From Cyanophora paradoxa CCMP329 (Eukaryota > Plantae > Glaucophyta), in assembly GCA_004431415.1 (NCBI GenBank), contig QPMI01000217.1:1-64000 (forward strand): a DNA stretch of 64,000 nt. Direction: 5' to 3'. The notes under the pieces were generated by a model. It was not told the DNA's origin and did no database searches. It worked only from the letters and a program-made list of their open reading frames with translations. Position 1 is the first letter of the stretch. Every line of letters starts with the position of its first letter. Shown in pieces: positions 27,001 through 43,275 of this stretch. The position numbers and the translations under genes were made by a program.

Positions 27001-27308
27001 TCCGGTCCTTTTTTCCGCGCAGCATTCCGCTCTTTCCGGGTTCTGACAACGAATTCCGGGCTATGATGCATGCACTAACACGTGGTTAAGAGCTCGGAGC
27101 TGGATCGGGAGATGAGCAGACTCGTCATTTTGTAAGTTACCGAAAACGGGGGCCCTACCCCGTTTCCAATTAAGGAGAACAAACTTGAAATCACAAATCA
27201 AAGATACAGCAGACTATCACAAATCACATTATATAATTATCAAGCTTAAGAAGGATATATATATATATCGAACACGAGAAGGGACATGATCATACTATGA
27301 TCATGATA
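27001..27308 (+). repeat. 308-bp direct duplication, left copy (target-site duplication of the LINE)
   Basis: TCCGGTCCTTTTTTCCGCGC...CATACTATGATCATGATA, identical by eye to 42968-43275 including the 14-nt (AT)7 run. Confidence 0.95.
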
Positions 27309-29870
27309 CCCGCCGCAGGAGGCCGCGCGCCGCCGCCGCCGGTCGCCCAGGACGCGAGGGGACGAGGCCGCGACGCCGCCGACGCCTCCCGCCGACGCCG
27401 AGCAAGCCCGTGCAGCCCCGCCCGCGCCCCCCGCCCGCGCGCCGCGCGCCCCGCCGCAGGAGGCCGCGCGACGCCGCCGCCGGTCGCCCAGGACGCGAGG
27501 GGACGAGGCCGCGACGCCGCCGACGCCTCCCGCCGACGCCGAGCGAGCCCGTGCAGCCCGCCCGCGCCCCCGCCCGCGCGCCGCGCGCCCGCCGCAGGAG
27601 GCCGCGCGCCGCCGCCGCCGGTCGCCCAGGACGCGAGGGGACGAGGCCGCGACGCCGCCGACGCCTCCCGCCGACGCCGAGCGAGCCCGTGCAGCCCGCC
27701 CGCGCCCCCCGCCCGCGCGCCGCGCGCCCCGCCGCAGGAGGCCGCGCGCCGCCGCCGCCGGTCGCCCAGGACGCGAGGGACGAGGCCGCGACGCCGCCGA
27801 CGCCTCCCGCCGACGCCGAGCGAGCCCGTGCAGCCCCGCCCGCGCCCCCGCCCGCCGCCGCGCGCCCCGCCGCAGGAGGCCGCGCGCCGCCGCCGCCGGT
27901 CGCCCAGGACGCGAGGGGACGAGGCCGCGACGCCGCCGACGCCTCCCGCGACGCCGAGCGAGCCCGTGCAGCCCCGCCCGCGCCCCCGCCCGCGCGCCGC
28001 GCGCCCGCCGCAGGAGGCCGCGCGACGCCGCCGCCGGTCGCCCAGGACGCGAGGGGACGAGGCCGCGACGCCGCCGACGCCTCCCGCCGACGCGAGCGAG
28101 CCCGTGCAGCCCCGCCCGCGCCCCCGCCCGCCCGCCGCGCGCCCCGCCGCAGGAGGCCGCGCGCCGCCGCCGCCGGTCGCCCAGGACGCGAGGGGACGAG
28201 GCCGCGACGCCGCCGACGCCTCCCGCCGACGCCGAGCGAGCCCGTGCAGCCCCGCCCGCGCCCCCGCCCGCGCGCCGCGCGCCCCGCCGCAGGAGGCCGC
28301 GCGACGCCGCCGCCGGTCGCCCAGGACGCGAGGGGACGAGGCCGCGACGCCGCCGACGCCTCCCGCCGACGCCGAGCGAGCCCGTGCAGCCCCGCCCGCG
28401 CCCCCGCCCGCGCGCCGCGCGCCCCGCCGCAGGAGGCCGCGCGACGCCGCCGCCGGACGCCCAGGACGCGAGGGGACGAGGCCGCGACGCCGCCGACGCC
28501 TCCCGCCGACGCCGAGCGAGCCCGTGCAGCCCCGCCCGCGCCCCCGCCCGCGCGCCGCGCGCCCCGCCGCAGGAGGCCGCGCGCCGCCGCCGCCGGTCGC
28601 CCAGGACGCGAGGGGACGAGGCCGCGACGCCGCCGACGCCTCCCGCCGACGCCGAGCGAGCCCGTGCAGCCCCGCCCGCGCCCCCCGCCCGCGCGCCGCG
28701 CGCCCCGCCGCAGGAGGCCGCGCGACGCCGCCGCCGGACGCCCAGGACGCGAGGGGACGAGGCCGCGACGCCGCCGACGCCTCCCGCCGACGCCGAGCGA
28801 GCCCGTGCAGCCCCGCCCGCGCCCCCCGCCCGCGCGCCGCGCGCCCCGCCGCAGGAGGCCGCGCGCCGCCGCCGCCGGACGCCCAGGACGCGAGGGGACG
28901 AGGCCGCGACGCCGCCGACGCCTCCCGCCGACGCCGAGCGAGCCCGTGCAGCCCCGCCCGCGCCCCCCGCCCGCGCGCCGCGCGCCCCGCCGCAGGAGGC
29001 CGCGCGACGCCGCCGCCGGTCGCCCAGGACGCGAGGGGACGAGGCCGCGACGCCGCCGACGCCTCCCGCCGACGCCGAGCGAGCCCGTGCAGCCCGCCCG
29101 CGCCCCCCGCCCGCGCGCCGCGCGCCCCGCCGCAGGAGGCCGCGCGACGCCGCCGCCGGACGCCCAGGACGCGAGGGACGAGGCCGCGACGCCGCCGACG
29201 CCTCCCGCCGACGCCGAGCGAGCCCGTGCAGCCCCGCCCGCGCCCCCCGCCCGCGCGCCGCGCGCCCCGCCGCAGGAGGCCGCGCGCCGCCGCCGCCGGT
29301 CGCCCAGGACGCGAGGGACGAGGCCGCGACGCCGCCGACGCCTCCCGCCGACGCCGAGCGAGCCCGTGCAGCCCCGCCCGCGCCCCCGCCCGCGCGCCGC
29401 GCGCCCCGCCGCAGGAGGCCGCGCGACGCCGCCGCCGGTCGCCCAGGACGCGAGGGGACGAGGCCGCGACGCCGCCGACGCCTCCCGCCGACGCCGAGCG
29501 AGCCCGTGCAGCCCGCCCGCGCCCCCCGCCCGCGCGCCGCGCGCCCCGCCGCAGGAGGCCGCGCGCCGCCGCCGCCGGTCGCCCAGGACGCGAGGGACGA
29601 GGCCGCGACGCCACCGACGCCTCCCGCCGACGCCGAGCGAGCCCGTGCAGCCCCGCCCGCGCCCCCGCCCGCGCGCCGCGCGCCTTGCCGCAGGAGGCCG
29701 CGCGACGCCACCGCCGGTCGCCCAGGACGCGAGGGACGAGGCCGCTACGCCACCGACGCCTCCCGCCGACGCCGAGCGAGCCCGTGCAGCCCCGCCCGCG
29801 CCCCCGCCCGCGCGCCGCGCGCCCCGCCGCAGGAGGCCGCGCGACGCCGCCGCCGGTCGCCCAGGACGTG
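27309..29870 (+). repeat. Tandem array of ~140-bp GC-rich monomers (~18.4 copies) at the LINE 5' end
   Basis: Anchor GCCCCGCCGCAGGAGG recurs at 28141, 28281, 28421, 28561 etc.; 19 unit starts counted. Variants are mainly homopolymer-length changes and a few SNPs. Confidence 0.95.
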
Positions 29871-30212
29871 AGGGGGACCCCGCTGCTGTTGACCCGCTCC
29901 CCGCCACCACCTTGCCGACGCCAGCCCGGGGCCTGCATATGCATGCACTACAGCCGGATCTCTAGCCTGCCGTCCCTCGACTGCCCATGCAAGCAGACGC
30001 ATGCACGCCGAGCATATGCATGCACATGCATCCACAAACAAAATCGCCGACCTCATGCCTCTGCCCACGGACAATTGTTAACGCTAGCTACAGCTAGCTG
30101 TAGTCCTAGGACAGCCCAAACTCTGACCCGGGGGAGGAACAACCGGACGGGTACAGCAGTCAGCACCCTGGACGGCAATCCATTCGCACCGCTGGCGCGG
30201 CTGGGCGGCCGG

Positions 30213-30728
30213 ATGGCGCCTGACGACGATGCTGACAGCAACGACGACCCCAACGCGGCGGCTGACCCCCGAACTGGCCGTGGCCTGGAAAGCGGGCCGG
30301 GATCGAAGCGACAACGCCCGCAGTCGGCAGAGCCGGCCACCCCGTCCCGCCGCCACACGGAGAAGTCTATGCGTGGATACAGGCCGGGCGACACGCCAAA
30401 CCGACATGCCAACCCCCGAATGGTTCGGAACCTGACGCCCATGGAGCCCGCGGCGGAGCCGGCATCTGGGATGCCCGCGGCGGGGCGGGCGCAGCCAATG
30501 GCCGCGGTGGCCGTGGGGTGGACATCATCTGGGGCGACCTCCCCCGGGGCGGCTTTGCTGGGAGAGCCCGGGGCGGGATGGGGCCCCCCCCGCGGTGGGC
30601 GCGGACTCCCAGGCCGAGGCGCCGGCGGCAGGGGTGGACGAGGAGCACGTGGTGGCCGCGGCTTTGGGGCTGGCGCCGGCCGGGGTGGCGGCGGCCCTGG
30701 ACAGCAGCGGCTGCCCTGGCAGTACTGA
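30213..30728 (+). CDS. Possible short ORF1-like protein with an RGG-rich tail
   Basis: MAPDDDADSNDD...GGRGLPGRGAGGRGGRGARGGRGFGAGAGRGG..*; lies at the ORF1 position of the element. No RRM or CCHC motif recognised. Confidence 0.3.
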   Translation: MAPDDDADSNDDPNAAADPRTGRGLESGPGSKRQRPQSAEPATPSRRHTEKSMRGYRPGDTPNRHANPRMVRNLTPMEPAAEPASGMPAAGRAQPMAAVAVGWTSSGATSPGAALLGEPGAGWGPPRGGRGLPGRGAGGRGGRGARGGRGFGAGAGRGGGGPGQQRLPWQY

Positions 30729-33291
30729 GCTAGCTGCAACTCCAGCGCCAACCGCCGCGAGCCACAGCAAGTTAAGAGTAAGGCAGCCAAGCCCCTCCGG
30801 CCTAGATCCTGAACCAGTAATAGCGCTAGTTATACAAATGAATTCGCACACACCAAGACAAATGGCTAGGGATATGACTGCAGTGTCCATCTGTGTCAAG
30901 TCGAGAGATGAGCCTACGGGAACAAGCCTTTCGGACATCGGACCGGGTGGAGCTATTGTACTGGAGAAAGGGGCCTATACCTGCCTAGAAGCACTGCCTA
31001 CACCTGCCTAGAGAGCCGAAGCAGAGCAGAGCTACTATAACCCCCCTCAGGACAAGGGCGCCTACAGAGAGGACCGATGTATAAGCGAGGATGAGGTCGA
31101 AGCGGCTGAGCCTGAACTATAGCCCTCAATTTGGCAGGGAAGAAGCGCACTAAGAGAGCAAGGCCGACTAACCCCAGGGAGGGCCGGAAACCGGAGCCCG
31201 TGAGAGCCCGGGTGAAAACCGGCGGGCGCACAGCATCGCCGGCCGCAGCCGGCGACCTGTGCTCCTCGGCCGAGAGATACCTCCTCCAGCTGGCGCGCGC
31301 GCGCGCGGAGTCCGCTGCGGCGGGGGTTGGGAGGCCCGGGCCGCCCGAGTGCTCAGAAGCACGTCGCCTCGCCAGGAATCCAAGCATCTGTGCGGCCGCG
31401 ACGCCCACGGCCGCGACGCGGGCGTGCACTCACACGACCGACGATCATCTGCGCGGGCGCAGCGCAGGTCGCCGGCCCCATAGCCGCGGGCGGCCGATCG
31501 CTGCCGCAGAGAAGTGCTTGGGCTGAACGAGAGAGCAGCTGCTGAAGCCGCCGCTGGTGTCCGCTGGAGTAGCTCGCCGAACCGACCCACGGAGCGGATT
31601 CCTAACGGACGCGCGGCTAACCAGCTAAAGGAGGGATGGAGGCGCCGCCGAGGCGATTCGCGGCAGCCGGAGAGGCGCCCAGCGGGCAGGAGCCCGCCAC
31701 CTACTTTCTCTCCAGGTCGGGGTACGCGAATCCCAGTAATAGCGCTAGCTCTAGTCCCGCCAGAACCAGTAATAGCGCTAGCTCTAGTCCCGTCATGTAC
31801 GGACACCTCGACGCCGAAGTCACAACATCCAGATCTCGAGCTAGAGCTAAACAGGTGCAGAGCGGTGGTACCAGTGGGGGACCCAAAGGAGAACACCCGT
31901 ACTCATACGCGCCGGATGTGCACCTGGCCCTGTAGATCTAGACCCGATCACGACTTGCACGCGAGGCCCAGAGGGGTACGTGGGTGGAAAACGTACCCAT
32001 CAACTGTGCGGATCCGGCTAGCCCGGGCTCGCGCACGCTCGACAGCCACGCTAGGAGAACAGTCTAATCATGACTGCACCACCGGCCTGAAGCGCCAGCC
32101 TGTACTTACGACACCGACCGCTGCCTCCCGGACCCGGCCCCAGCAGGCCGCGGATCCTGCTGTATACGTAACACGACAGCTAGTCCCTAAGCGAAGCCAG
32201 GAGCCCGAGGCCGGTGCCGAAGCCGGCCCCCGCTACAGACCTGTACCTCAGAAGCTACTACGGTGCCGGCACCGGCTAGCCTGTCATGATCAAAGATGGC
32301 GCCAGAGGACCGACGCCGACGCCGGTACCGGTGCCGATGCCGGCCTCGACCTGACGGCGCCATCGGCACGTACGTATACGTATACGCGGCTCCGAGTAGT
32401 TATAACGCCTTGCACTAGCACTAATGCATATGATACCGAAACAGCTGGCGCCGGCACGCGCACCGGCGCCGGCGCCACCTTTAACTTGGGTAGTAACAGC
32501 CCCCCCGATCACGACCTAGCAGGCCCCAGATCCCGATCTAGAGCTAGGGCTGCCAAAGATGGGTACGCCAAGGCAATCACAACAGCTAGCGCCACCGCCA
32601 CTACAATTACTAGTACCAGTATGACACTGTGTATGTGCGCCGCCGGCGCTACCGCCGCGCGCGGCGCCAGCATAGCATACGTAGCCTCAGTGTCAGTGGC
32701 CCGCACGTGTACGGTCTGCACTGTAGACTACACATACTGCACCACATATACAGGCTACGTCTACACGGCGGTGCACGGCGCACTGCACGCCGCGGCGCCG
32801 GCCGGCGCTGCAGCTGGATCCCGACCCGAATTCGAATCTCCGCGACGCCTACCGCGAGCTCGATCACTGGCTCCGGCGAACCGTCCGAGTCCCCGGCCCC
32901 AAGACATATGCATGAACAGAAAAAGAATTTTTTCTGCCCTCCCGGACCGGCCGCTAGCGCCGGCACTACGTCGTCGTCGCCATTCATTGTGCACCCGCCA
33001 ATCGGGAGCAACCAGTCAATCGGGCCCGATAGCTGCCATGACCACAGCGCTAGAGGCTCACATGCGAATGCGGGGTGGCGCCGCCAGGCAGCGGCAGCGG
33101 GCTCGGCCCTCGCCGCGGCGGGCCAAGCTGACCCGGCCATGCTGGCCCATGCATCACGCGCGAGCCCGGCATCATGGCATCCAACGACAGCGCTATCCGG
33201 CCCGCCCCCCGCGCACCGCCGCGAAGAACCCAGGCCTGGAGTCTGGCCTGCACCAGGGGCACAAGAAAATGTTCCACCCGCCCAGAGTCCC

Positions 33292-36200
33292 ATGACCGCA
33301 TATAACACGCCTGGCCCCGCTGGTGTCGGCCGTCCCGCGCCGCTGCTCCGCACGCTATTTCCCCTCGAGCTATTTACACACGAGCGCCTCGGAGCCAAAC
33401 CTGCGGGCACTCACCGAAAATCGGGTATCATACGCCGCCGCTTTGACTCTGACCAGTATTGGAGACTCGCGACCTGGAACGCCCGCACCTGCTCTAGCGT
33501 CAACCATGTCGGCCAGATCCAGAAATATATGCTTGACTGGGGGCTGAGCGTATTAGGGGTCCAATCACTTAACTGCACCCAGGCTACGGTCAGAGCGATG
33601 CGCAGGTCAGTGACATCGGGGCTCATGCTCACGTCCGTGCACGCCGACTCGGCCACGCGCACAACTAGTGCTCAGGAGCTCCCAGCTCGAGCCCCGCCCA
33701 CCCCGCCCCTCTCGCAGAAGAAACTCCGCCAAAATCGAGCCTCCCCCCGCGGCTCCGGCGTAGCCCTTTTTTTCTCAGAAAATATGGCCAAGCACTGTTT
33801 TAAGACCTACACAATGCCAGGCCGCGTGGCCGGCTGTGAGCTTCGATTTGCAAATAATGTTCAGATCTTTATCGCCAGCGTGTACCTCCCCCCCGGCGAA
33901 AGTCGGACGGCGCGGTCTACTGAAAGTGCAAAAATCTTCGACTATCTCCGCGCGACCATGTACGCTGACTGGGCGCTCCGCCCCCGCGCGCACTTTTTCC
34001 TCCTTGGCGATCTTAACAGCTGCCTCTGTCCCGAGACGGGCAAAATCAGACAGGGGCAATATGCGACCACACGAGAACCTGATCACCGCTGGTGGCATGA
34101 ACTGCTTCACGACTGGACCCTCTCCGACGCTGCCACAGCCATGGGCACCGATGACCAAATCACCTTCATATTTCCTGACGCTCCTGACAACCCCAACCCC
34201 CGAGGCATCGCCCCAGATGGCACGCTCCGCCATGCTACCAGGCTCGACTACATCCTACAATCCCAAGTCGCGACTAACGCCCTTCGAGCGGCCCAAGCGT
34301 CGCCTAGAAACGCCCCTTTCTCCTCGGACCATTTCCCACTCCTTGCAGAGTACAGTAAACGGGCCCTGGCCATCAAATATAAACTGGGGCCCCCAGCGTC
34401 TTCGCCCGGCCCTCCGCGTTTCAAGTATGCGACACAGGCATCGCTCACAAAAATTCGCTTCAAAGAACTACTGGAAGAAAAGCTCCAGCAGCCGGTGCCG
34501 GGGTCCTCCGCTAGCGTACGAGAGCTACTCGCAACGCTGGAGGACGATGACGGCACCCCGCCAGAGGACCGCCTAGCCCGCCTGCACGAAGCCCTCAAAT
34601 CCACTCTCGCCCACATCTGTGACCTCGGCCAATCGCCAGTATTTGGCATCTTTACGCCCCCAAAAATCCCTCAAAAATTCTCCCGCCGCGGCCGCCCCGA
34701 ATCCAACCTGCTCACGAGGGCCCAGGAACTGCGCAAGGCATGGGAAGCGGCGCGCCACGGGATCGACTCCACGCCGCGCCGCGTACGGCACTCCCTCTCT
34801 GACCTGCGCAGGGCAATCTCAAATCACAACCACCGGCTTGACAAACTCCCAATAGACAAGCGGTCAGGCTATCTTAAACTCCCACTACCCCCTGTGCCGC
34901 CGCCATTCTCTGCCCGACAACCAAGCTGGCTCGACTATTTTCCAAGCTTCACCACTTGGGCCTCGGCTTTGGACACCAAAGTCCAGGCCACATTAAACGT
35001 TTCGAAGCCACGACAATCAGAGCAAACCGAGAGCGCTCGCAGCGCATGTTCAAGACAGACCTCGCCCAATACCTCCGCCAAACACTTGAAGCCCCAGAAC
35101 GCAGGCCGATTACCTCCTTCTCCCTCTGCCACGCTGGAGAATATCAGGTATACGGCAATGAAGATGCAGTGAAACAGTTCGCACGCCATCACATGCATGC
35201 CTGGACACGGCAGCGTAGCCCACTCACAGCGAACAGGGACCCGGGCGCGCTGCCACTTAGTACATGTGCACAGGAGGCCTCAATATGGCGCCGACTACAC
35301 TCCTCGCGCCAGGATATTGATGATGCAATTTATGCGTACCTAATGGAACCCACCAGCGAGGCCGAACTGGACCGAATCATCGGCTCTCTCCGAAACGGTG
35401 CGGCGGGGCCCTCGGGATTTTCCCACGAAATGATAAAAATGCTGTGGGCGGCACCGGTCCTTTCAAAGAAAACTTGCGAAGAACTACGCAAGGCGGGCCT
35501 GGACCCGGAGCCGCTCCAAGAACCCGATAACCTGTTCCCGACGTGCCGCCAGGTAATCCTCACTACGGTAAATCTGATCCTAAAACTCTCGTCTGTCCCT
35601 GCGCCCCTTCTTCACGGAAATATATGTCTTATCCCCAAGGGCGGGGAATGGGATGGGCACCCTGACAATGTCCGCCCCATTACACTCCAAGAATGCACAT
35701 TGAAGCTTGTGACTGCCATTCTCACTGACCGCCTCTCGCGCGTCCTTCGTAAACACGATATATTGCAGGGCGCGAACTTCGCCTTTACTCGAGGCAAGTC
35801 CACCGACGAGCCTCTGTACATGCTGCGCGCGCTACTGGAGGACGCAAAACAATTCTCGAAACCGATCTACCTGCTACTGCTAGATATTCGCAGAGCCTAC
35901 GACAGCGTCAGCTGGTCTAGCATGGAAATGGCACTCCGCCGCCTAAAAATTCCCGAACGGTACATAAGCCTCTACGGACAAATCTCAACATCACGTACAG
36001 CGTCCGTCGCGACAGGGTACGGCCCAACTGACCCCTTCGATGTGGAGTGCGGGCTCCCGCAAGGAGGAACCGAGTCCCCAATTCACTGGCTCATCTTCTA
36101 TGACGTATTTCTATCGGCTTTACGCGAAGTCAGCGCTGCGGAGAGCACCCAATACTCCATGGGCCCGCCGCCCTCTGCGTCTGACGCTAACCTGCCCGCG

Positions 36201-39200
36201 CCCACCCGACGCCTACCGTAGTACGAGCGCGCCTGCCCCGGGTGACCTCGCCGGGGCAAGCATACGCAGACGACACCGTACTTATTAGCGGTACAGCCCG
36301 GGGCATCCAGCTGCACGCAGACCTGGCCTCTGAATTCTTCTGGATACATGATATTGCCCTCAACGCGAAGAAAACCGAATTTACGTACAACAACGTCTCC
36401 CCACGCCCGTCTGCCCCGCTACTAGGCCCGCCCGATGCTAAAGAACCGGCCGACAAAGTCCTTGCGCCGAACAAACCATTCAAGGTGCTCGGGGTCTGGA
36501 TGACAGCAAATCTGGACTGGCGGCGGCAATTTGAGGCTGTATACTCAACAGCTCGGGCAGCCTGCGCGATACTAAGGCGTAAGAAACTCACCGCAAAGAG
36601 ACGATATACATAGTAAATAGCGTCCTTCTCCCTCGCATCACTTACGCCTGCAAGATTGTTTCCTTTACCGAGAGACAATGTGCCCAGCTCGACACTCTCT
36701 GGATGACGCTCACTAAACATCATGCCCGCCTTAGGGGGTCCACGCCCAACGCGCTCATGTGGAGCCGAGGCTTCTACGGCCTCAAGAGAACGGAGGACGA
36801 ACAGCTGGCCATTCACGTGCTCGATGAAACCATCCGCACGAACCACCCCCTGCTTCTCCCGTATACCATGCACCGCATTTTCGCAGCGCAGGAGCAACTG
36901 GGGCTTCCCCTTCCGCCATACTGCTACCCCAATTTACAGCTGGGCCCCGCAGCTTACAGAGACAATTTTGCACTAGCTGTAGCGCGAAATCTGACCCGCG
37001 CCGGCTACAAACTCGACTCAGGCAAGGACTATCTCGTTCCGGCCCTGCCTCACCCGCAGCTCGAACGCCGCTTTGTGCTCACAACACTGCTCCCCCCGCG
37101 CCTCCTGCGTGAGGCTGCACCATTCCTTTGGCGCCACGATATCCTCACAGCTGCTGAAGTCACGGGGCCCGACGGCGTCAGTGTGCTCGACTGGATTAGC
37201 TTATGGGGCAGCGGGAAAATTAAACAGCGACTCAATAGACCTCCCTCCTGGTTCCCGTCGTTCACCCGAGCAATATGTCAGCCCGTCGGCCCGCGCGCCA
37301 TCCCCCGTCGTCTCCGCTTCCCCATGCACCTGCAGCCTGCGCAAAATCCGGCTGCTGCCCAACGTACCCTTCTTGAAGCCGGCCTGCTCTCTCCCCAGTA
37401 CAAAGTCGGCGGCCTCGTTTGGACAACGGAAGCGTATCTAGGACGCATCTGCAATATCCGGCGGACAACTGACGCTGACGACGGCAGAGAACGCGTCCTA
37501 GTTGAGCTCGAACACTGGGTCCGCCGAGACAAAGGCCAGGACGACCGAGAGGACCACATATATGACACCACCGGCGAACCCGTCTCCTTCTTCCGCTGCA
37601 TAATGGATCCCAAAGAATGCGACAGCCGCTTCACAGCGAAAACGCCGGAAGCAGAGGCTCTCCGCCGCGCATGTGACCACTCAGACCCGGCCTCCCAACG
37701 GTGCCGCTGGACCGAAGACACAGCCTACATCTACCCCGCCCGACTTCAGAGCCTGGTCCCCGAGTCGCGGTCAGGCCGTGTCGCCGAGCATGCTCGCATT
37801 TTCCTTGAAGATAAAATAACGTGGTGGCCCGAGTTCCGCGACACTCATTTCCTCCCCCCGTGGGAACAGGACTGGAATTATGATCCAGATGATCACGAGG
37901 CGCCCCAGCGGCCAGACGGAGTCGCCGCTCGCGACCCTGGGACCGTCCCCCCGCCGACAGCGCCTCGGGCCTACCCCCAACGCCGACAGTTGAGCGACTT
38001 CTGCATCCCATCGTCAGAGTATGCTGACCCATTTTGGAACCTGATTGCCGCGGAGCTCGGCCGCACCTCCCTCCCGCTTGACCGCGAGGGCCGACTCGCA
38101 GCCACGGATGCCAGTACCATGGACGCTGCCTCAGAAGCTGCACTCACGGCCTACGCTGGCGTCTGGCCCCGTGAGAGCAACCCGGCCTCACTAGCTGACG
38201 AAGCTGCCCGCACGCAGCGAGGGATAGCCCTCCGTCAACAAATTCACGCACTAGCTGACCGGCTGGGCACAACCGGCGTCGATACTGACCAGATGGCGAA
38301 ACTTCGCGGCCTTGCAGACGCCATCCCGACCGACGGCAGCGACTTTTTCGTGGCCCCGTGTCCTGGCACAGTGAACAATAACAAAGGCGAGCTCCTCGCC
38401 GTCCTGTCCGCCCTGCTGCTCTCTCCCGAAGGCTGCACAGTGAAAACTGACAGCTTCACTGCAATGGCGGACTATTCCAAGTACGTCTCGCATCGCGCCA
38501 CCGCCACTCTTCGCAGCTGCATTCGAGCCTCGTACTCCCATCACCTTAAAGCGTATGCTGAGGTGCAGTGCATCCGGCTTGCACTAGCAAGGGCCGTGGC
38601 ACCCGACAGAATGCTATACGAAGAACGTCTTGTCAAAGTCAAAGCCCACCAGAAAGAATATATAACTCGGCGCCGCCCGCGCCCGGCTGCCGCCCCCGCT
38701 GAAATGGCCGACCACGACTCGGAATCAGACGCAGACTCATACGAATCCTACCTCTCTGACCGAGACCCGGTCGCTCCCGAACCTACGGAGGCGGAACTGA
38801 TAGCTCAATATGGCCCTGGCACGGGAGTATACGAAGGGCGCGCGAACCCGCTAACCGGCGCCTACAACTATATCTCCGAGCACCTCCGCGCGGGCACTGC
38901 CCACATCCACCGTCGGAACGCCCGCCGAGCCGTCCACCAAATGCAGCAAGCGTCTCGTGCCTCCAGGCGAGCAGAACGACAGAGGCGGCGCGAAGCCCGG
39001 GCTGCGCTAGGTCAGCATACACCAGGACTACCAAGCCTGCCCCTGCTGGTGGAAGAAGAACGGGTTCCAAACCGTGCATTTGATCGGGACAACGCACGAG
39101 CCGACCGCCTCGCCGCTGCGGCACTGGCTCTGCACCCCAGCGCAGACCTCTCCCGGCAGGCACTCGACGGCCGGGAACTTTCCTCCTGGGCTGACCCTGA

Positions 39201-42200
39201 GGAAGCAGCCTGGCAATCTGACCCGAAGACCCGTCCCGGCCGCAACAGTTGCATCAAAACGCGCGTGGCACGCCCGCGGGAACCGGTCTTTCCCCTGGCG
39301 GATTTGACATGGTCCTACTCTTTTCGCCCCCGCGCTGCTGGAACGAGAACTACGACACTCGTAGAGTTTACAGAGTTGAGTCTGACCCGCGAGCACACGT
39401 AAAAAATACGTGCGAATTTCGGAACTTCTCCCGTCTCCTTGCAACCGAAAAATGCCATTTGGGCAGTCCGGTAGACCGTGCGCGCCTCGCCCGCGAATAC
39501 CGCAAGAAAGGGCTCTCCCGCGATGCATCGCACCCCCTGAATGCGAGGCTTGCTCAAATCACGAAATTCAGCTTCGGACTTGCACCCCTCATGCGTGAAC
39601 GTGCCCGGGACGCCCCCCATCTCTACAGTGCAATAAATTCAAATGGACTCTGTGTTCGCGCAGGCTGCGCGTCCGTGCTAGGCCCAGACGGCCGGCCCAC
39701 CCCAGCCCCGCCATGGCAGCCGCCTGCGTCTGACCCCGAGGAAGACGGTGGGAGTCGGAACGGCCCCAACGGCGACGGCACCCCGGCCGCACGAGACGCA
39801 CGCCAGGCACCGCGGCCCCCCCCTATCGTTAGCGGGACGCCTGAAACCCACGACCATGCCTTTGGTCTCTGCCCAGCAACACGCACCCTCCGTATCGAAA
39901 CCCAAACTAAGATATTCAACCTATTGTACGAAACCATATCGTCTCAACGCCTAAAAACTGCAGTCGATGCGGCAGCAGCTGGCGACCCAGCCTACAAGCT
40001 ACCCCCGGCCCTGCGCCAGGACGGACTGTTGCTGCGCCAACTGTTCCCGGCCTTTGCACTGGCTGACGATGCAAACTGGGGATGGTCAGAGCGTCAGCGC
40101 CAACGGCCGGGCCCCCTTCCTTCGCACCTCACGCAGCCACTCTATGGCCTGCCCTATCAGTGGCAAAGCCTCGGCAGCAAACTCTTCGCCGACCTTGCCT
40201 GCGATTCTCCCCGCCACACCGTCAGGCTCCTCCTTCCTCGTAGCCTCATCCCTGCCCTGATTTACTTAGATGTACGTAGACCGGCGGCGCTTAAATGCGC
40301 CAACGCAATTATGGCCACCATCATAGACTACACCCAAGCAATCTGGAAGGCTCGCAATAGCGAAGTCCAGTCCTGGCAACGCCGACACGGGATTACTCGC
40401 CGCCAAACTCATGCACCTCGACCCTCGCGCCCTGCCGAGCCCTCACCGGCGAGGTCGATGACAGCCAGGATTAGGGATGAGCCCACGAGCCCCTCGACCG
40501 TGGTGGCCCCGGCCCCGCGTCGACGGATACGTATACCCAACGGCCAGCTCACCCTCTCATCAGACCTACAATTAGTCAGCCAGTCGCGCCGCTCTCGAAC
40601 CCGCGCTGCTCCCCCAGCACCGTGGCCGGCCACGGCCCCCCCTACAACAGCGATACCCGCAACGCCAGTGCCCCCTACCACCGCCCCGAGCTCGAGCCCG
40701 AGACCTAGACCTGTAGCTAGGCCGGCAGCTGCTAACAGCATCACCAATATTAATGCCAGTAATGCAGGGTGGCCGGCTCCGCCGTCCCCACCTGCATTAC
40801 GTGCCGCCTGGGCCCAAGTACGCCGCTCCCCTACCCGCGCTCTACCCAACAGTGCAGTCCGAGAGCTCCCGGCAGCCCGCAGCGGCCCCGCTGCACTGTT
40901 TGGCAGTGCCTCCGTATCGCTCCATGACCTAGCCACGCTGAACGGCTCGTCCTGGGTGAATGCCGACGTCATCAACTACCACCTTGCCCGACTAAACCTT
41001 CTTGCGAGCGGAGAAATTAACCCTCGCCGACGCGTCTTACTTTTCCCGCATACTTTCTACGCCGCTATTCCCCAGACAATAACGCCGGCGGGCAGCGCCC
41101 GCCTGCGCCGTCGCACCGCTGGGCGCGGAATTAATGTCTTTGACTATGACCTATTACTCTTCCCTATCCACACCCCGGGCCACTGGATCCTTGCAGCCCT
41201 CCATCTCCGTGCTCGCCGTGCTGAACTATACGATGGATACAATCTCCCGGGCCCCGAAGAGGCCCGCCGTCAACTCCTGACCCTCCTAAAATGGCTCAAC
41301 ATGGAGCGCGAATGCGCAGCCCTAGGCTCCTCGACCGGCGCCGACGACGCCCTCACCTGGCCCCTCCCCTCAGCCACCCGATTCTCCATCCCGGCCCAAA
41401 ACGATCGCTTCAACTGCGGGATTTTCGTCTGTGCCTTCGCCGAAATACTTGTCCGTGCTCTGGAACATGACCCCACGGCCTACACGCCCTCCTTCACGGG
41501 CACTGTGTCTAACTGCGCCACCTGGCGCGGCCTCATTCTTTCTCGGATTCTAGGCTCGCAGGCCTTGGATACGGAGGCGCCCACGAGCACCGCCTCCCAG
41601 CCCGAGCAGCCCCGGGCAATACTGGTGGCTGCGCTGGCCCCGGGAGAACTGCCACGGGATGCCCCCCTCAGCTGCCGGTGCGGTTACGCTGCTGCCTCCC
41701 CCGAAGCCCTGGCGCAGCACAAACGCAAAGGAAAATGTACCGCTGCAGTGTCGCCCCCCAAAACCAGCGAGACAGACCGCGCCCCCCAAGACGAAGCCAT
41801 TGCAGGCCCATCCAGGCCCAAAATAGTCACGCCCGCACCGGAACCCCAATACCGGCCCCCGCTGAGCGCGCAGCCTACCCCTAGGCCTGCGGCCCGGAAC
41901 TCGCGAGCAGACATCCGCACCTTCTTCCAACCCCGCCCGCGCCCGTCGGCCGTCAGCGACACCTCTATAGCTAGGCCTGCAGCTAACCCGACCTCCACGA
42001 CGCCCCCCAGGCTGAGCTCGAGCTCACCTACAGACAGGCCCCAGAGTCCAAAGGACAGTCCGCCAACGCAAGTGCCCCCGCCTGACACACCAGTGGCACA
42101 AGCCGACGGCACGGCAACAGTGCGGACGCGACGCCCGCGCCTCCTTCGAGAAATTCAAGAGTCGGCGGGATTCCGTGCAGCCCGAGGCAATAATCCCGGA

Positions 42201-42587
42201 CCCGGACCTCGCCCCCGCAGATCTAGAACAGCTGCAGCAGCTTCCGTCACCCCTGCTGCTGCTCACGGTCACGCCCAGCGGCGGGATGGAGCGTCGTCCG
42301 CAGCCGCATCAGCTGTGCCCGAGCCTCTTCCCGAACCTCAAGACCGGCCTCCCCACAAGACCGGCCGCCGCCCCGCCCTCCCACCGAAGAGGCCCGGCCC
42401 TCACCCCAGCCTCCTCCCCCGCACCCCCCTCCTCCACCCTTCCTCTTCTCGAAACGGGCTCTCCAGCTCCACCCTCCCCATCTCGCCCCTCCAGCAACCT
42501 GTCCCATCTGTTTTCTGTCGCTCCACCGACACCGCCACCTCCACCGCCTTCCACGCCCGCTCCTCTGTCCTGCACGGGAACACGTGA
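33292..42587 (+). CDS. LINE polyprotein (~3100 aa after 4 single-base frame corrections): APE endonuclease - RT - RNase H - Zn knuckle - Ulp1/C48 protease - Zn finger
   Basis: APE: ATWNA, SVYLP, LLGDLN, RLDYI, SDHFP (33460-34350). RT: AAGPSG, RPITLQE, LDIRRAYDSV, GLPQGGTESP, AYADD, FKVLGVW (35390-36520). RNase H: ATDAS, KGELLAV, KTDS, KVKAH, NARADRLA (38100-39120). Zn knuckle CVRAGC..ETHDHAFGLC and IWKARN. Ulp1: WVNADVIN, FY, FPIH..GHW, YD, QNDRFNCG (40915-41550). Start codon is uncertain. Confidence 0.9.
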
Positions 42588-42922
42588 GGTACCACCGCGG
42601 AGATCTCCTCCTCTCTCTTCTCATCTTTGGGATCTCGCCGCTTGGCTTTAAACCCTGAGCCTGCCAGCCAACAATCTCCCGGCCCCAGCCCCCTGCCACC
42701 TCTCTACCCCACCCCATCGTGACCGGCCCTGGCCCGTCGCGGGGGGGAGGCTCCGAGAGAGCCGCCTCAAGGGTAGAGGGGGCGGGGCTCGCAATAGGGT
42801 ATAGCCCTTGGGGCGCCTAGTCGGAGACCCAATAGTGGGGAGTAGACTAGGCTAAAGTATATTAGTTGGCCTAGGGTAGACCTAGGCCTAGGGTAGACAG
42901 AAAACGATGTTTTTTGTGTACC

Positions 42923-42967
42923 AGGGGCTCTGTCCCCTAATAAACTACGGAAAACTAAAAAAAAAAA
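42923..42967 (+). terminator. LINE 3' end: short stem-loop, AATAAA and poly(A)
   Basis: AGGGG-CTCTGT-CCCCT hairpin (42923-42938), AATAAA (42939-42944) and A11 (42957-42967) directly abutting the right duplication. Confidence 0.75.
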
Positions 42968-43275
42968 TCCGGTCCTTTTTTCCGCGCAGCATTCCGCTCT
43001 TTCCGGGTTCTGACAACGAATTCCGGGCTATGATGCATGCACTAACACGTGGTTAAGAGCTCGGAGCTGGATCGGGAGATGAGCAGACTCGTCATTTTGT
43101 AAGTTACCGAAAACGGGGGCCCTACCCCGTTTCCAATTAAGGAGAACAAACTTGAAATCACAAATCAAAGATACAGCAGACTATCACAAATCACATTATA
43201 TAATTATCAAGCTTAAGAAGGATATATATATATATCGAACACGAGAAGGGACATGATCATACTATGATCATGATA
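42968..43275 (+). repeat. 308-bp direct duplication, right copy
   Basis: Same length and sequence as 27001-27308. It begins immediately after the poly(A). Confidence 0.95.

Follow-up and report, generated by a model that had tools for sequence, protein, structure and literature searches.

A SENP-like C48 protease domain at the C-terminal end of ORF2 in a giant LINE of the glaucophyte Cyanophora paradoxa

Ulp1, OTU and Josephin protease domains borne by transposons have been catalogued for twenty years, and we know of no case in which a function has been demonstrated for any of them. A further example is described here from a stretch of 64,000 nucleotides of the glaucophyte Cyanophora paradoxa CCMP329 (assembly GCA_004431415.1, contig QPMI01000217.1, positions 1 to 64,000 of the forward strand), referred to below as the window, which contains a giant long interspersed element (LINE) whose second open reading frame (ORF2) ends with a Ulp1/SENP (C48) protease domain, a zinc finger and a disordered tail.

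Among the closest described systems, the nematode LINEs NeSL and Utopia-1_TSP, which are site-specific and of the restriction-like endonuclease (RLE) type, carry a Ulp1-like protease at the N-terminus (PMC4640811). In Dualen LINEs the protease is a Josephin, for which interference with protein degradation has been proposed (PMC9977147; bioRxiv 2021.04.23.441226), and insertions of Dualen-4b, an active element of Chlamydomonas, are flanked by target-site duplications (TSDs) with a median length of 900 bp, termed exceptional by the authors (PMC9977147). The initial annotation of the window had already named the N-terminal Ulp1 of the RLE-type NeSL elements and the Josephin domain of Dualen. A C48 domain has been described together with APE-type endonuclease, reverse transcriptase (RT), RNase H, CCHC knuckle and RLE, within a single protein of 5,287 aa, in Dualen-1_GCr of the cryptophyte Geminigera cryophila (Lescot et al. 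2016; PMC5029228). In the DNA transposons Ginger1 and Mutator (the ULP1-carrying Mutator-like elements, MULEs), Ulp1 or OTU domains are located C-terminally on the transposases and have been suggested to act in transposition or in repair signalling (PMC2836005).

A search of the full-text literature, with Repbase and Dfam outside its scope, revealed no report of a C-terminal C48 domain on an APE-type LINE, or of any in glaucophytes. The novelty that the initial annotation had attached to the arrangement must nonetheless be narrowed, since a C48 domain within an APE, RT and RNase H containing LINE is already published, at an N-terminal site, for Dualen-1_GCr (PMC5029228); what looks unreported in the literature searched is the C-terminal site in an element without a detectable RLE.

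The window carries a single recent insertion of a multi-copy family of non-LTR retrotransposons (LTR, long terminal repeat), and the element is a giant APE-RT LINE. Its ORF2 is arranged in the order APE, RT, probable RNase H, CCHC, Pro-rich linker, C48, C2HC finger and disordered tail. The C48 domain, which has a complete active site, is a long-resident, frame-conserved C-terminal module of the ORF2 of this family and not an accident of the window copy. The C-terminal features are the following.

40917..41573, + strand: Ulp1/SENP (C48) protease domain (Pfam PF02902; phmmer SENP1; AlphaFold2 (AF2)/Foldseek)
41673..41738, + strand: C2HC zinc finger (C-x-C-x13-H-x5-C; CRC...H...C), a predicted beta-beta-alpha unit with no Pfam family
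41739..42587, + strand: Pro/Ser/Arg-rich disordered tail of ~280 residues, and stop (TGA 42585-42587)

The domain is contained within a + strand ORF of 1112 codons (39249-42587), where Peptidase_C48 (PF02902) matches residues 569-742, corresponding to nucleotides 40953-41474, with an E-value of 1.3e-10 and 42 bits against a gathering cut-off of 20.7. The active site comprises His 41181 (within GHW), Asp 41232 (YD), the oxyanion Gln 41397 and Cys 41415 (NCG), with the motif WVNADVINY at 40953. Triad and Gln are found in the order typical of the C48 family of MEROPS clan CE, align to the catalytic residues of SENP1 and are invariant in alignment A1, which contains 40 homologues. In a phmmer search of the PDB the best match was human SENP1 (3e-14), followed by SENP2, a Chaetomium Ulp1-like protease and then SENP5, 3 and 7; both Trp residues of the Gly-Gly tunnel align with those of SENP1, and NEDP1 was absent among these matches.

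Structure prediction led to the same family. The AF2 model of the region, built with the 40 homologues, has a mean pLDDT of 78.8, with values of ~90 in the core, and Foldseek matched it to SENP5, 1, 3 and 2 and to yeast Ulp1, with E-values from 2e-11 to 3e-9; TM scores by target are 0.71-0.78 for these SENP/Ulp1 matches, the chain of an MBP-SENP3 fusion excepted. NEDP1 (E 3e-7, TM 0.70) and the bacterial CE-clan effectors XopD and NopD were found at lower ranks, and a fold search of the ESM Atlas returned C48 clusters only.

The complete C48 domain that the initial annotation had placed past the zinc knuckle, the IWKARN end and a Pro-rich linker is therefore present, in the frame of the CCHC/IWKARN end, and direct checking reproduced the coordinates given there for His, Asp, Gln and Cys, and for the CxC...H...C pattern at 41673-41738. 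Only the start of the domain needs correction: position 40915 lies one or two bases off the reading frame, while 40917-41747 translates cleanly into a compact unit of ~280 residues formed by the C48 domain and the zinc finger. The finger itself, residues 250-270 of the model, was predicted without homologues as a guide and shows two short strands and a helix, with pLDDT values of 83-88. The disordered tail ends, as annotated, upstream of the poly(A), the stop codon at 42585-42587 being followed by AATAAA at 42939 and a run of eleven A at 42957-42967. Within the tail, 63 nt (21 codons, 41972-42036) are skipped in the majority contigs described below, an in-frame length polymorphism between copies.

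Relatives of the protease were sought in several collections. Exhaustive HMMER comparison of the C48 domain against 1.84 billion protein representatives produced 1,792 matches, the best E-value being 4e-15 and the best identity 41%. Identity to cellular proteins is 31-41% over the matched stretch and 25-33% across alignment A1. The long matches scanned, as well as those with a named source, are cellular SENP1/2-type proteins (from animals, Fonticula, an ichthyosporean and Chara), and no fusion to an RT was found among the long matches scanned. Word-indexed protein searches, with the domain alone or with the 1112-aa ORF, gave no match; contigs from the JGI metagenomes and IMG/VR gave pattern matches only, none of which was confirmed; and a feature search of the ESM Atlas gave no usable match. 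A donor or sister element of the C48 domain is thus not nameable from the databases searched. Such an empty result does not prove absence, because gene sets cover transposon ORFs poorly.

In order to follow the module across the family, contigs from three short-read DNA runs of the same organism (X1, X2 and X17; 2012, 2019 and 2024; different study codes) were compared with the window over positions 36100-42099. The summed contig depth, which derives from collapsed contigs and is a crude copy count, is nearly flat over the whole interval: in run X1 it amounts to 330-390 in the C48 region (40900-41700) against 350-520 in the RT. Lower-depth contigs, 10-15% diverged, span the region from CCHC to linker, and one of them covers the catalytic core (41174-41714) with 55 differences and one 6-nt indel. 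The domain, which the initial annotation had attributed to a LINE lineage, is accordingly not limited to the window copy, its depth being equal to that of the RT in the three runs and its catalytic core being covered also in a subfamily ~10% diverged.

The reading frame was compared in the same way. In the window copy the frame of C48 is separated from that of RT and RNase H by breaks near 36215-36223, 36593 and 39221-39291, and one more break is found between APE and RT. Relative to the window, the majority contigs lack 8 nt at 36215-36223 and have an additional C at 36593 and single additional C at 39221, 39234, 39276 and 39291. When these indels and two in-frame 6-nt deletions are applied, the interval 34956-42587 becomes one ORF of 2,538 codons, running from RT to tail with the same stop, while the unedited window frame over this interval contains 41 stops; the lengths of the remaining listed indels (6, 6, 63, and 126 in place of 117) are all divisible by three. 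Annotation of the C48 domain as in frame with ORF2 is hence right for the CCHC/IWKARN end and, in majority copies, from RT to tail, and wrong for RT and RNase H in the window copy.

The window lacks a single C at five sites, and the frame breaks are probably long-read assembly errors within the repeat, because four of these five sites are located at or beside short C runs; the window copy may also be truly defective. The extra 8 nt at 36215-36223, unlike the C-run differences, could be a genuine lesion in this copy. If the break between APE and RT is likewise a defect of the copy or of the assembly, the family ORF2 would extend over ~3,000 codons, the read comparison having covered 36100-42099.

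Substitutions and composition were also evaluated. The 37 best-supported single-base differences between window and majority, a filtered subset of all differences, include 20 synonymous and 17 nonsynonymous ones, for a rough omega of ~0.3. The C48 segment has a GC content of 0.60 and a GC content at third codon positions (GC3) of 0.66, with C far in excess of G at these positions; these are the values of the APE and RT segments, while the flanking host DNA has a GC content of 0.70-0.86. The C. paradoxa genome as a whole has a GC content of 67.6% (PMC6704402). Differences between window and majority are mostly transitions (in X1, T>C 93, C>T 79, A>G 49, G>A 36), and many of the best-supported sites show T in the window against C in the majority, as expected if the window copy underwent deamination of methylated cytosines.

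A number of points weigh against a family-wide module with the SUMO-type role proposed below. Besides the limits given above for depth and for the 20:17 ratio, no close relative of the C48 domain, and no HMMER match below 1e-30, was found in the 1.84 billion representatives. The diverged contigs are known by coverage and difference counts, not by their letters, so that the catalytic residues there are unread. The runs presumed to be RNA contain next to no element sequence. Of 53 columns at least 85% conserved in the 40 best cellular relatives, 32 are kept by the domain, all catalytic positions included; the changed ones include the Asp in WLND, the Trp in RWT and an Asp that precedes the catalytic Cys. 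Some of the changed positions face SUMO in SENPs, the WLND Asp being one that contacts it, and the substrate may therefore have changed. Judged by its residues, the domain looks active yet atypical for a housekeeping SENP.

The part of ORF2 located upstream of the protease contains the following features.

33466..34345, + strand: APE-type endonuclease of ORF2, matched by Pfam Exo_endo_phos (E 1.3e-5; 25.5 bits, cut-off 24.5), with a possible ORF2 ATG at 33292
35631..36499, + strand: RT (RVT_1, E 2.5e-16 and 60 bits for the first part, 1.6e-4 for the second), split by the extra 8 nt at 36215-36223
38095..39115, + strand: probable RNase H, in which a long acidic stretch separates the His from the last Asp (Pfam RNase_H, E 0.003, 18.2 bits, under the cut-off of 25.8)
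39651..39872, + strand: CCHC zinc knuckle (CVRAGC ... ETHDHAFGLC), read directly from the sequence, with an insert of ~55 residues
40296..40358, + strand: end of the conserved ORF2 body (…IIDYTQAIWKARN), with IWKARN at 40341-40358
40359..40916, + strand: Pro/Ala/Arg-rich linker, from translation, with a GC content of 0.75 at codon position 2

These results agree with the APE-RT-RNase H LINE of the initial annotation as far as APE and RT are concerned, while the RNase H is weaker, being under its cut-off and relying in addition on its D-E-D-H-D motifs. For the APE, whose Exo_endo_phos score is barely over the cut-off, the motifs LATWNART and SSDHFPL were located by direct reading, and a PDB sequence search with the region gave no match. 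The only relatives of the RT in a collection of 5.8 billion protein sequences are nine gene models of Cyanophora paradoxa, with identities of 39-59%. Individual Cyanophora proteins align to both the APE and the RT parts, which places the APE upstream of a LINE-type RT within one coding unit, and C. paradoxa proteins align without interruption over the RT frame changes of the window copy. PDB matches of the RT are R2 (1.5e-11) and the L1 ORF2p (1.3e-7), a weak hint only for clade placement.

The D, E, D, H and D motifs of the putative RNase H are located at 38095, 38380, 38440, 38638 and 39091, and a PDB sequence search with this region gave no match. Between its His and last Asp, ~150 residues (38640-39090) are rich in acidic residues, Ser and Arg. 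Within the CCHC knuckle (39669-39848) a Pro/Gly/Asp-rich insert of ~55 residues separates CxxxC from HxxxxC, and the majority copies have an in-frame 6-nt deletion at 39776. Past the knuckle, no PD...(D/E)xK pattern indicative of an RLE was detected and no Pfam or PDB match was obtained in 39600-40500; the AF2 model of 39630-40400, all-helical with a pLDDT of 42.6, is uninformative. A degenerate RLE may be located there.

The element is 15,659 bp long, and its borders are defined by a perfect direct repeat of 308 bp that brackets it on both sides.

27001..27308, no strand: TSD, upstream copy, 308 bp, 100% identical to 42968-43275
27309..29875, + strand: 5' terminal tandem array, 140-bp unit, ~18 copies, GC content ~0.86 (Tandem Repeats Finder: period 140, 18.4 copies, 97% matches)
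29876..33291, + strand: 5' region, either untranslated region (UTR) or possible ORF1, no domain found
42588..42967, + strand: 3' UTR, with AATAAA at 42939 and the A11 tail (42957-42967) abutting the downstream TSD
42968..43275, no strand: TSD, downstream copy, identical to 27001-27308

Identity between the two copies of the duplication ends exactly at the first base of the 140-bp array and exactly past the A11 tail. The hallmarks of an APE-type LINE insertion are thus present, namely TSD, 3' poly(A) and multiple copies, the latter seen as high-depth collapsed contigs in the three runs; a second copy of the element was not found within the 64-kb window. At 308 bp, the TSD is far above the usual LINE length and resembles those of Dualen-4b in Chlamydomonas (PMC9977147). 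The tandem array, which adjoins the TSD, is open in all six frames through composition alone. A Pfam scan of 29877-30725 and 31514-33292 gave no match, and the ORFs within 29876-33291 look like chance ORFs of GC-rich DNA, from which they are not distinguishable.

As regards function, the balance tips slightly towards a recent multi-copy LINE insertion whose C-terminal C48 domain in ORF2 would act as a SUMO-type isopeptidase/hydrolase. The ORF2 protein (ORF2p) would bring the domain to the insertion site, where it would strip SUMO, or a similar modifier ending in Gly-Gly, from host factors of chromatin, repair or silencing, or from the element's own ribonucleoprotein (RNP). Removal of SUMO would promote target-primed reverse transcription or help the element to evade SUMO-dependent repression, and the C2HC finger and the tail probably tether the domain to nucleic acid or to a partner. 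The initial annotation had proposed a deSUMOylase or deNEDDylase serving as an anti-silencing or integration factor, or else a protease for polyprotein processing. Sequence comparison and predicted fold both favour a SUMO-type over a NEDD8-type enzyme, SENP1/2 being matched at 1e-14 with NEDP1 unmatched by sequence, and the Foldseek E-values being 1e-11 against 3e-7.

A different role would be that of a processing protease, cutting the ORF2 polyprotein of ~3,000 residues into modules at sites of the Gly-Gly type, either in cis or in trans. Proteases of the CE clan process polyproteins in adenoviruses, poxviruses and African swine fever virus, and the same role was reportedly once suggested for the N-terminal Ulp1 of NeSL. 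The unusual length and multi-domain composition of ORF2 would fit it, as would an altered substrate, given the many SENP-invariant positions changed outside the active site; candidate sites exist between the RT thumb and the RNase H (KVGG|L, ~37408) and inside the CCHC insert (EEDGG|S, ~39747). Such processing is nevertheless considered unlikely, and a SUMO-type role is favoured over it, because the domain has clearly remained close to SENP1/2 (1e-14), in contrast to viral processing enzymes, which have diverged strongly. Moreover, the ORF pieces contain only five Gly-Gly dipeptides, two of them within the RT (35640, 36063), one in the frame-break zone and none separating the ORF2 body from the protease; nor was a ubiquitin-like domain detected in any of the pieces. 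Comparison with other elements leads in the same direction, since the Ginger1 and Mutator transposases, single proteins with nothing to process, carry the same kind of domain at their C-terminus (PMC2836005), and since Dualen LINEs carry another protease of the same functional class, Josephin (PMC9977147; bioRxiv 2021.04.23.441226).

The domain might also be intact and act on NEDD8, on ubiquitin or on both, as XopD and NopD do, or mainly bind such a modifier, for example recruiting ORF2p to modified chromatin. The fold matches to NEDP1 and to XopD and NopD bound to ubiquitin are in line with this, and so is the loss of SENP-conserved residues, among them the WLND Asp, a SUMO contact. Sequence searches, however, return SENP1, 2, 5, 3 and 7 and Ulp1-like proteins without NEDP1, and the best library matches are all cellular SENP1/2-type proteins; as to binding only, the retained oxyanion Gln, triad and both Trp argue for catalysis. 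Another modifier, or mere binding, is for these reasons regarded as quite improbable. There is very little room for a neutral passenger, that is an exon of a host Ulp1 gene picked up by a single copy or by one young subfamily and of no use to the element. The failure to find a related LINE with a C48 domain in the public collections searched would suit a passenger, as would the frame breaks of the window copy itself; yet this explanation is already defeated by depth and frame, C48 depth equalling RT depth in three runs and the frame being kept across 10-15% diverged subfamilies with indels in multiples of three, and it is further contradicted by the excess of synonymous differences, by a composition that is fully element-like and by an identity of only 31-41% to any cellular protein.

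The family provides a clean test case, as it combines a complete active site with a young element (perfect 308-bp TSD), multiple copies and a conserved frame. SUMO control of transposons is so far known from animals and yeast; if SUMO is indeed removed from silencing or repair factors, this control would be linked to a counter-measure encoded by a transposon. A broader and more tentative proposal, doubtful at present, is that giant early-branching LINEs repeatedly and independently recruited proteases of ubiquitin-like modifiers (Josephin in the Dualen of green algae; N-terminal C48 in that of cryptophytes; C-terminal C48 with finger in the lineage described here), as integration with TSDs of hundreds of bp would need SUMO or ubiquitin to be removed at the nicked target or from the RNP. 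If so, the family would represent a natural example of a deSUMOylase encoded by a retrotransposon and serving as an integration or anti-silencing factor. Should the element prove ordinary, the LINE catalogue still gains a domain arrangement from the glaucophytes, a group in which transposons have hardly been described.

Compared with known systems, the domain shares with cellular SENP1, SENP2 and Ulp1 the fold, the His-Asp-Cys triad, the oxyanion Gln and the Trp pair, and these proteins are its best matches by sequence and structure; it differs from them in 21 of the 53 highly conserved columns and in being located inside a retrotransposon protein, next to a zinc finger. With Ginger1 and Mutator it has in common the C-terminal fusion of Ulp1 to the main enzyme of the element, but these are DDE-transposase DNA transposons, with a mechanism unrelated to target-primed reverse transcription. 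NeSL and Utopia are, like this element, non-LTR retrotransposons in which a Ulp1-like cysteine protease is fused in frame, whereas the element described here is of the APE type, with an N-terminal endonuclease and a C-terminal Ulp1.

Dualen-1_GCr resembles it in joining C48 with APE, RT, RNase H (probable here) and CCHC in a giant LINE protein; in that protein, however, the C48 domain is upstream of the APE, with a SET methyltransferase as its neighbour and an RLE after the CCHC, while here the C48 domain is C-terminal and followed by the C2HC finger, with no SET or RLE detected. Dualen/RandI elements, such as Dualen-4b_cRei, share the large size, APE, RT, RNase H (probable here), CCHC, an added cysteine protease of the type that deconjugates ubiquitin-like modifiers, and a long TSD; their protease is related to Josephin and not to C48, and the second endonuclease that defines Dualen, the RLE, was not found here. 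Because of this, the element is not filed under Dualen. The long TSD common to it and to the active Dualens of Chlamydomonas hints at a shared integration mechanism in protease-carrying LINEs. The element is a new arrangement of the known transposon habit of carrying Ulp1-type proteases.

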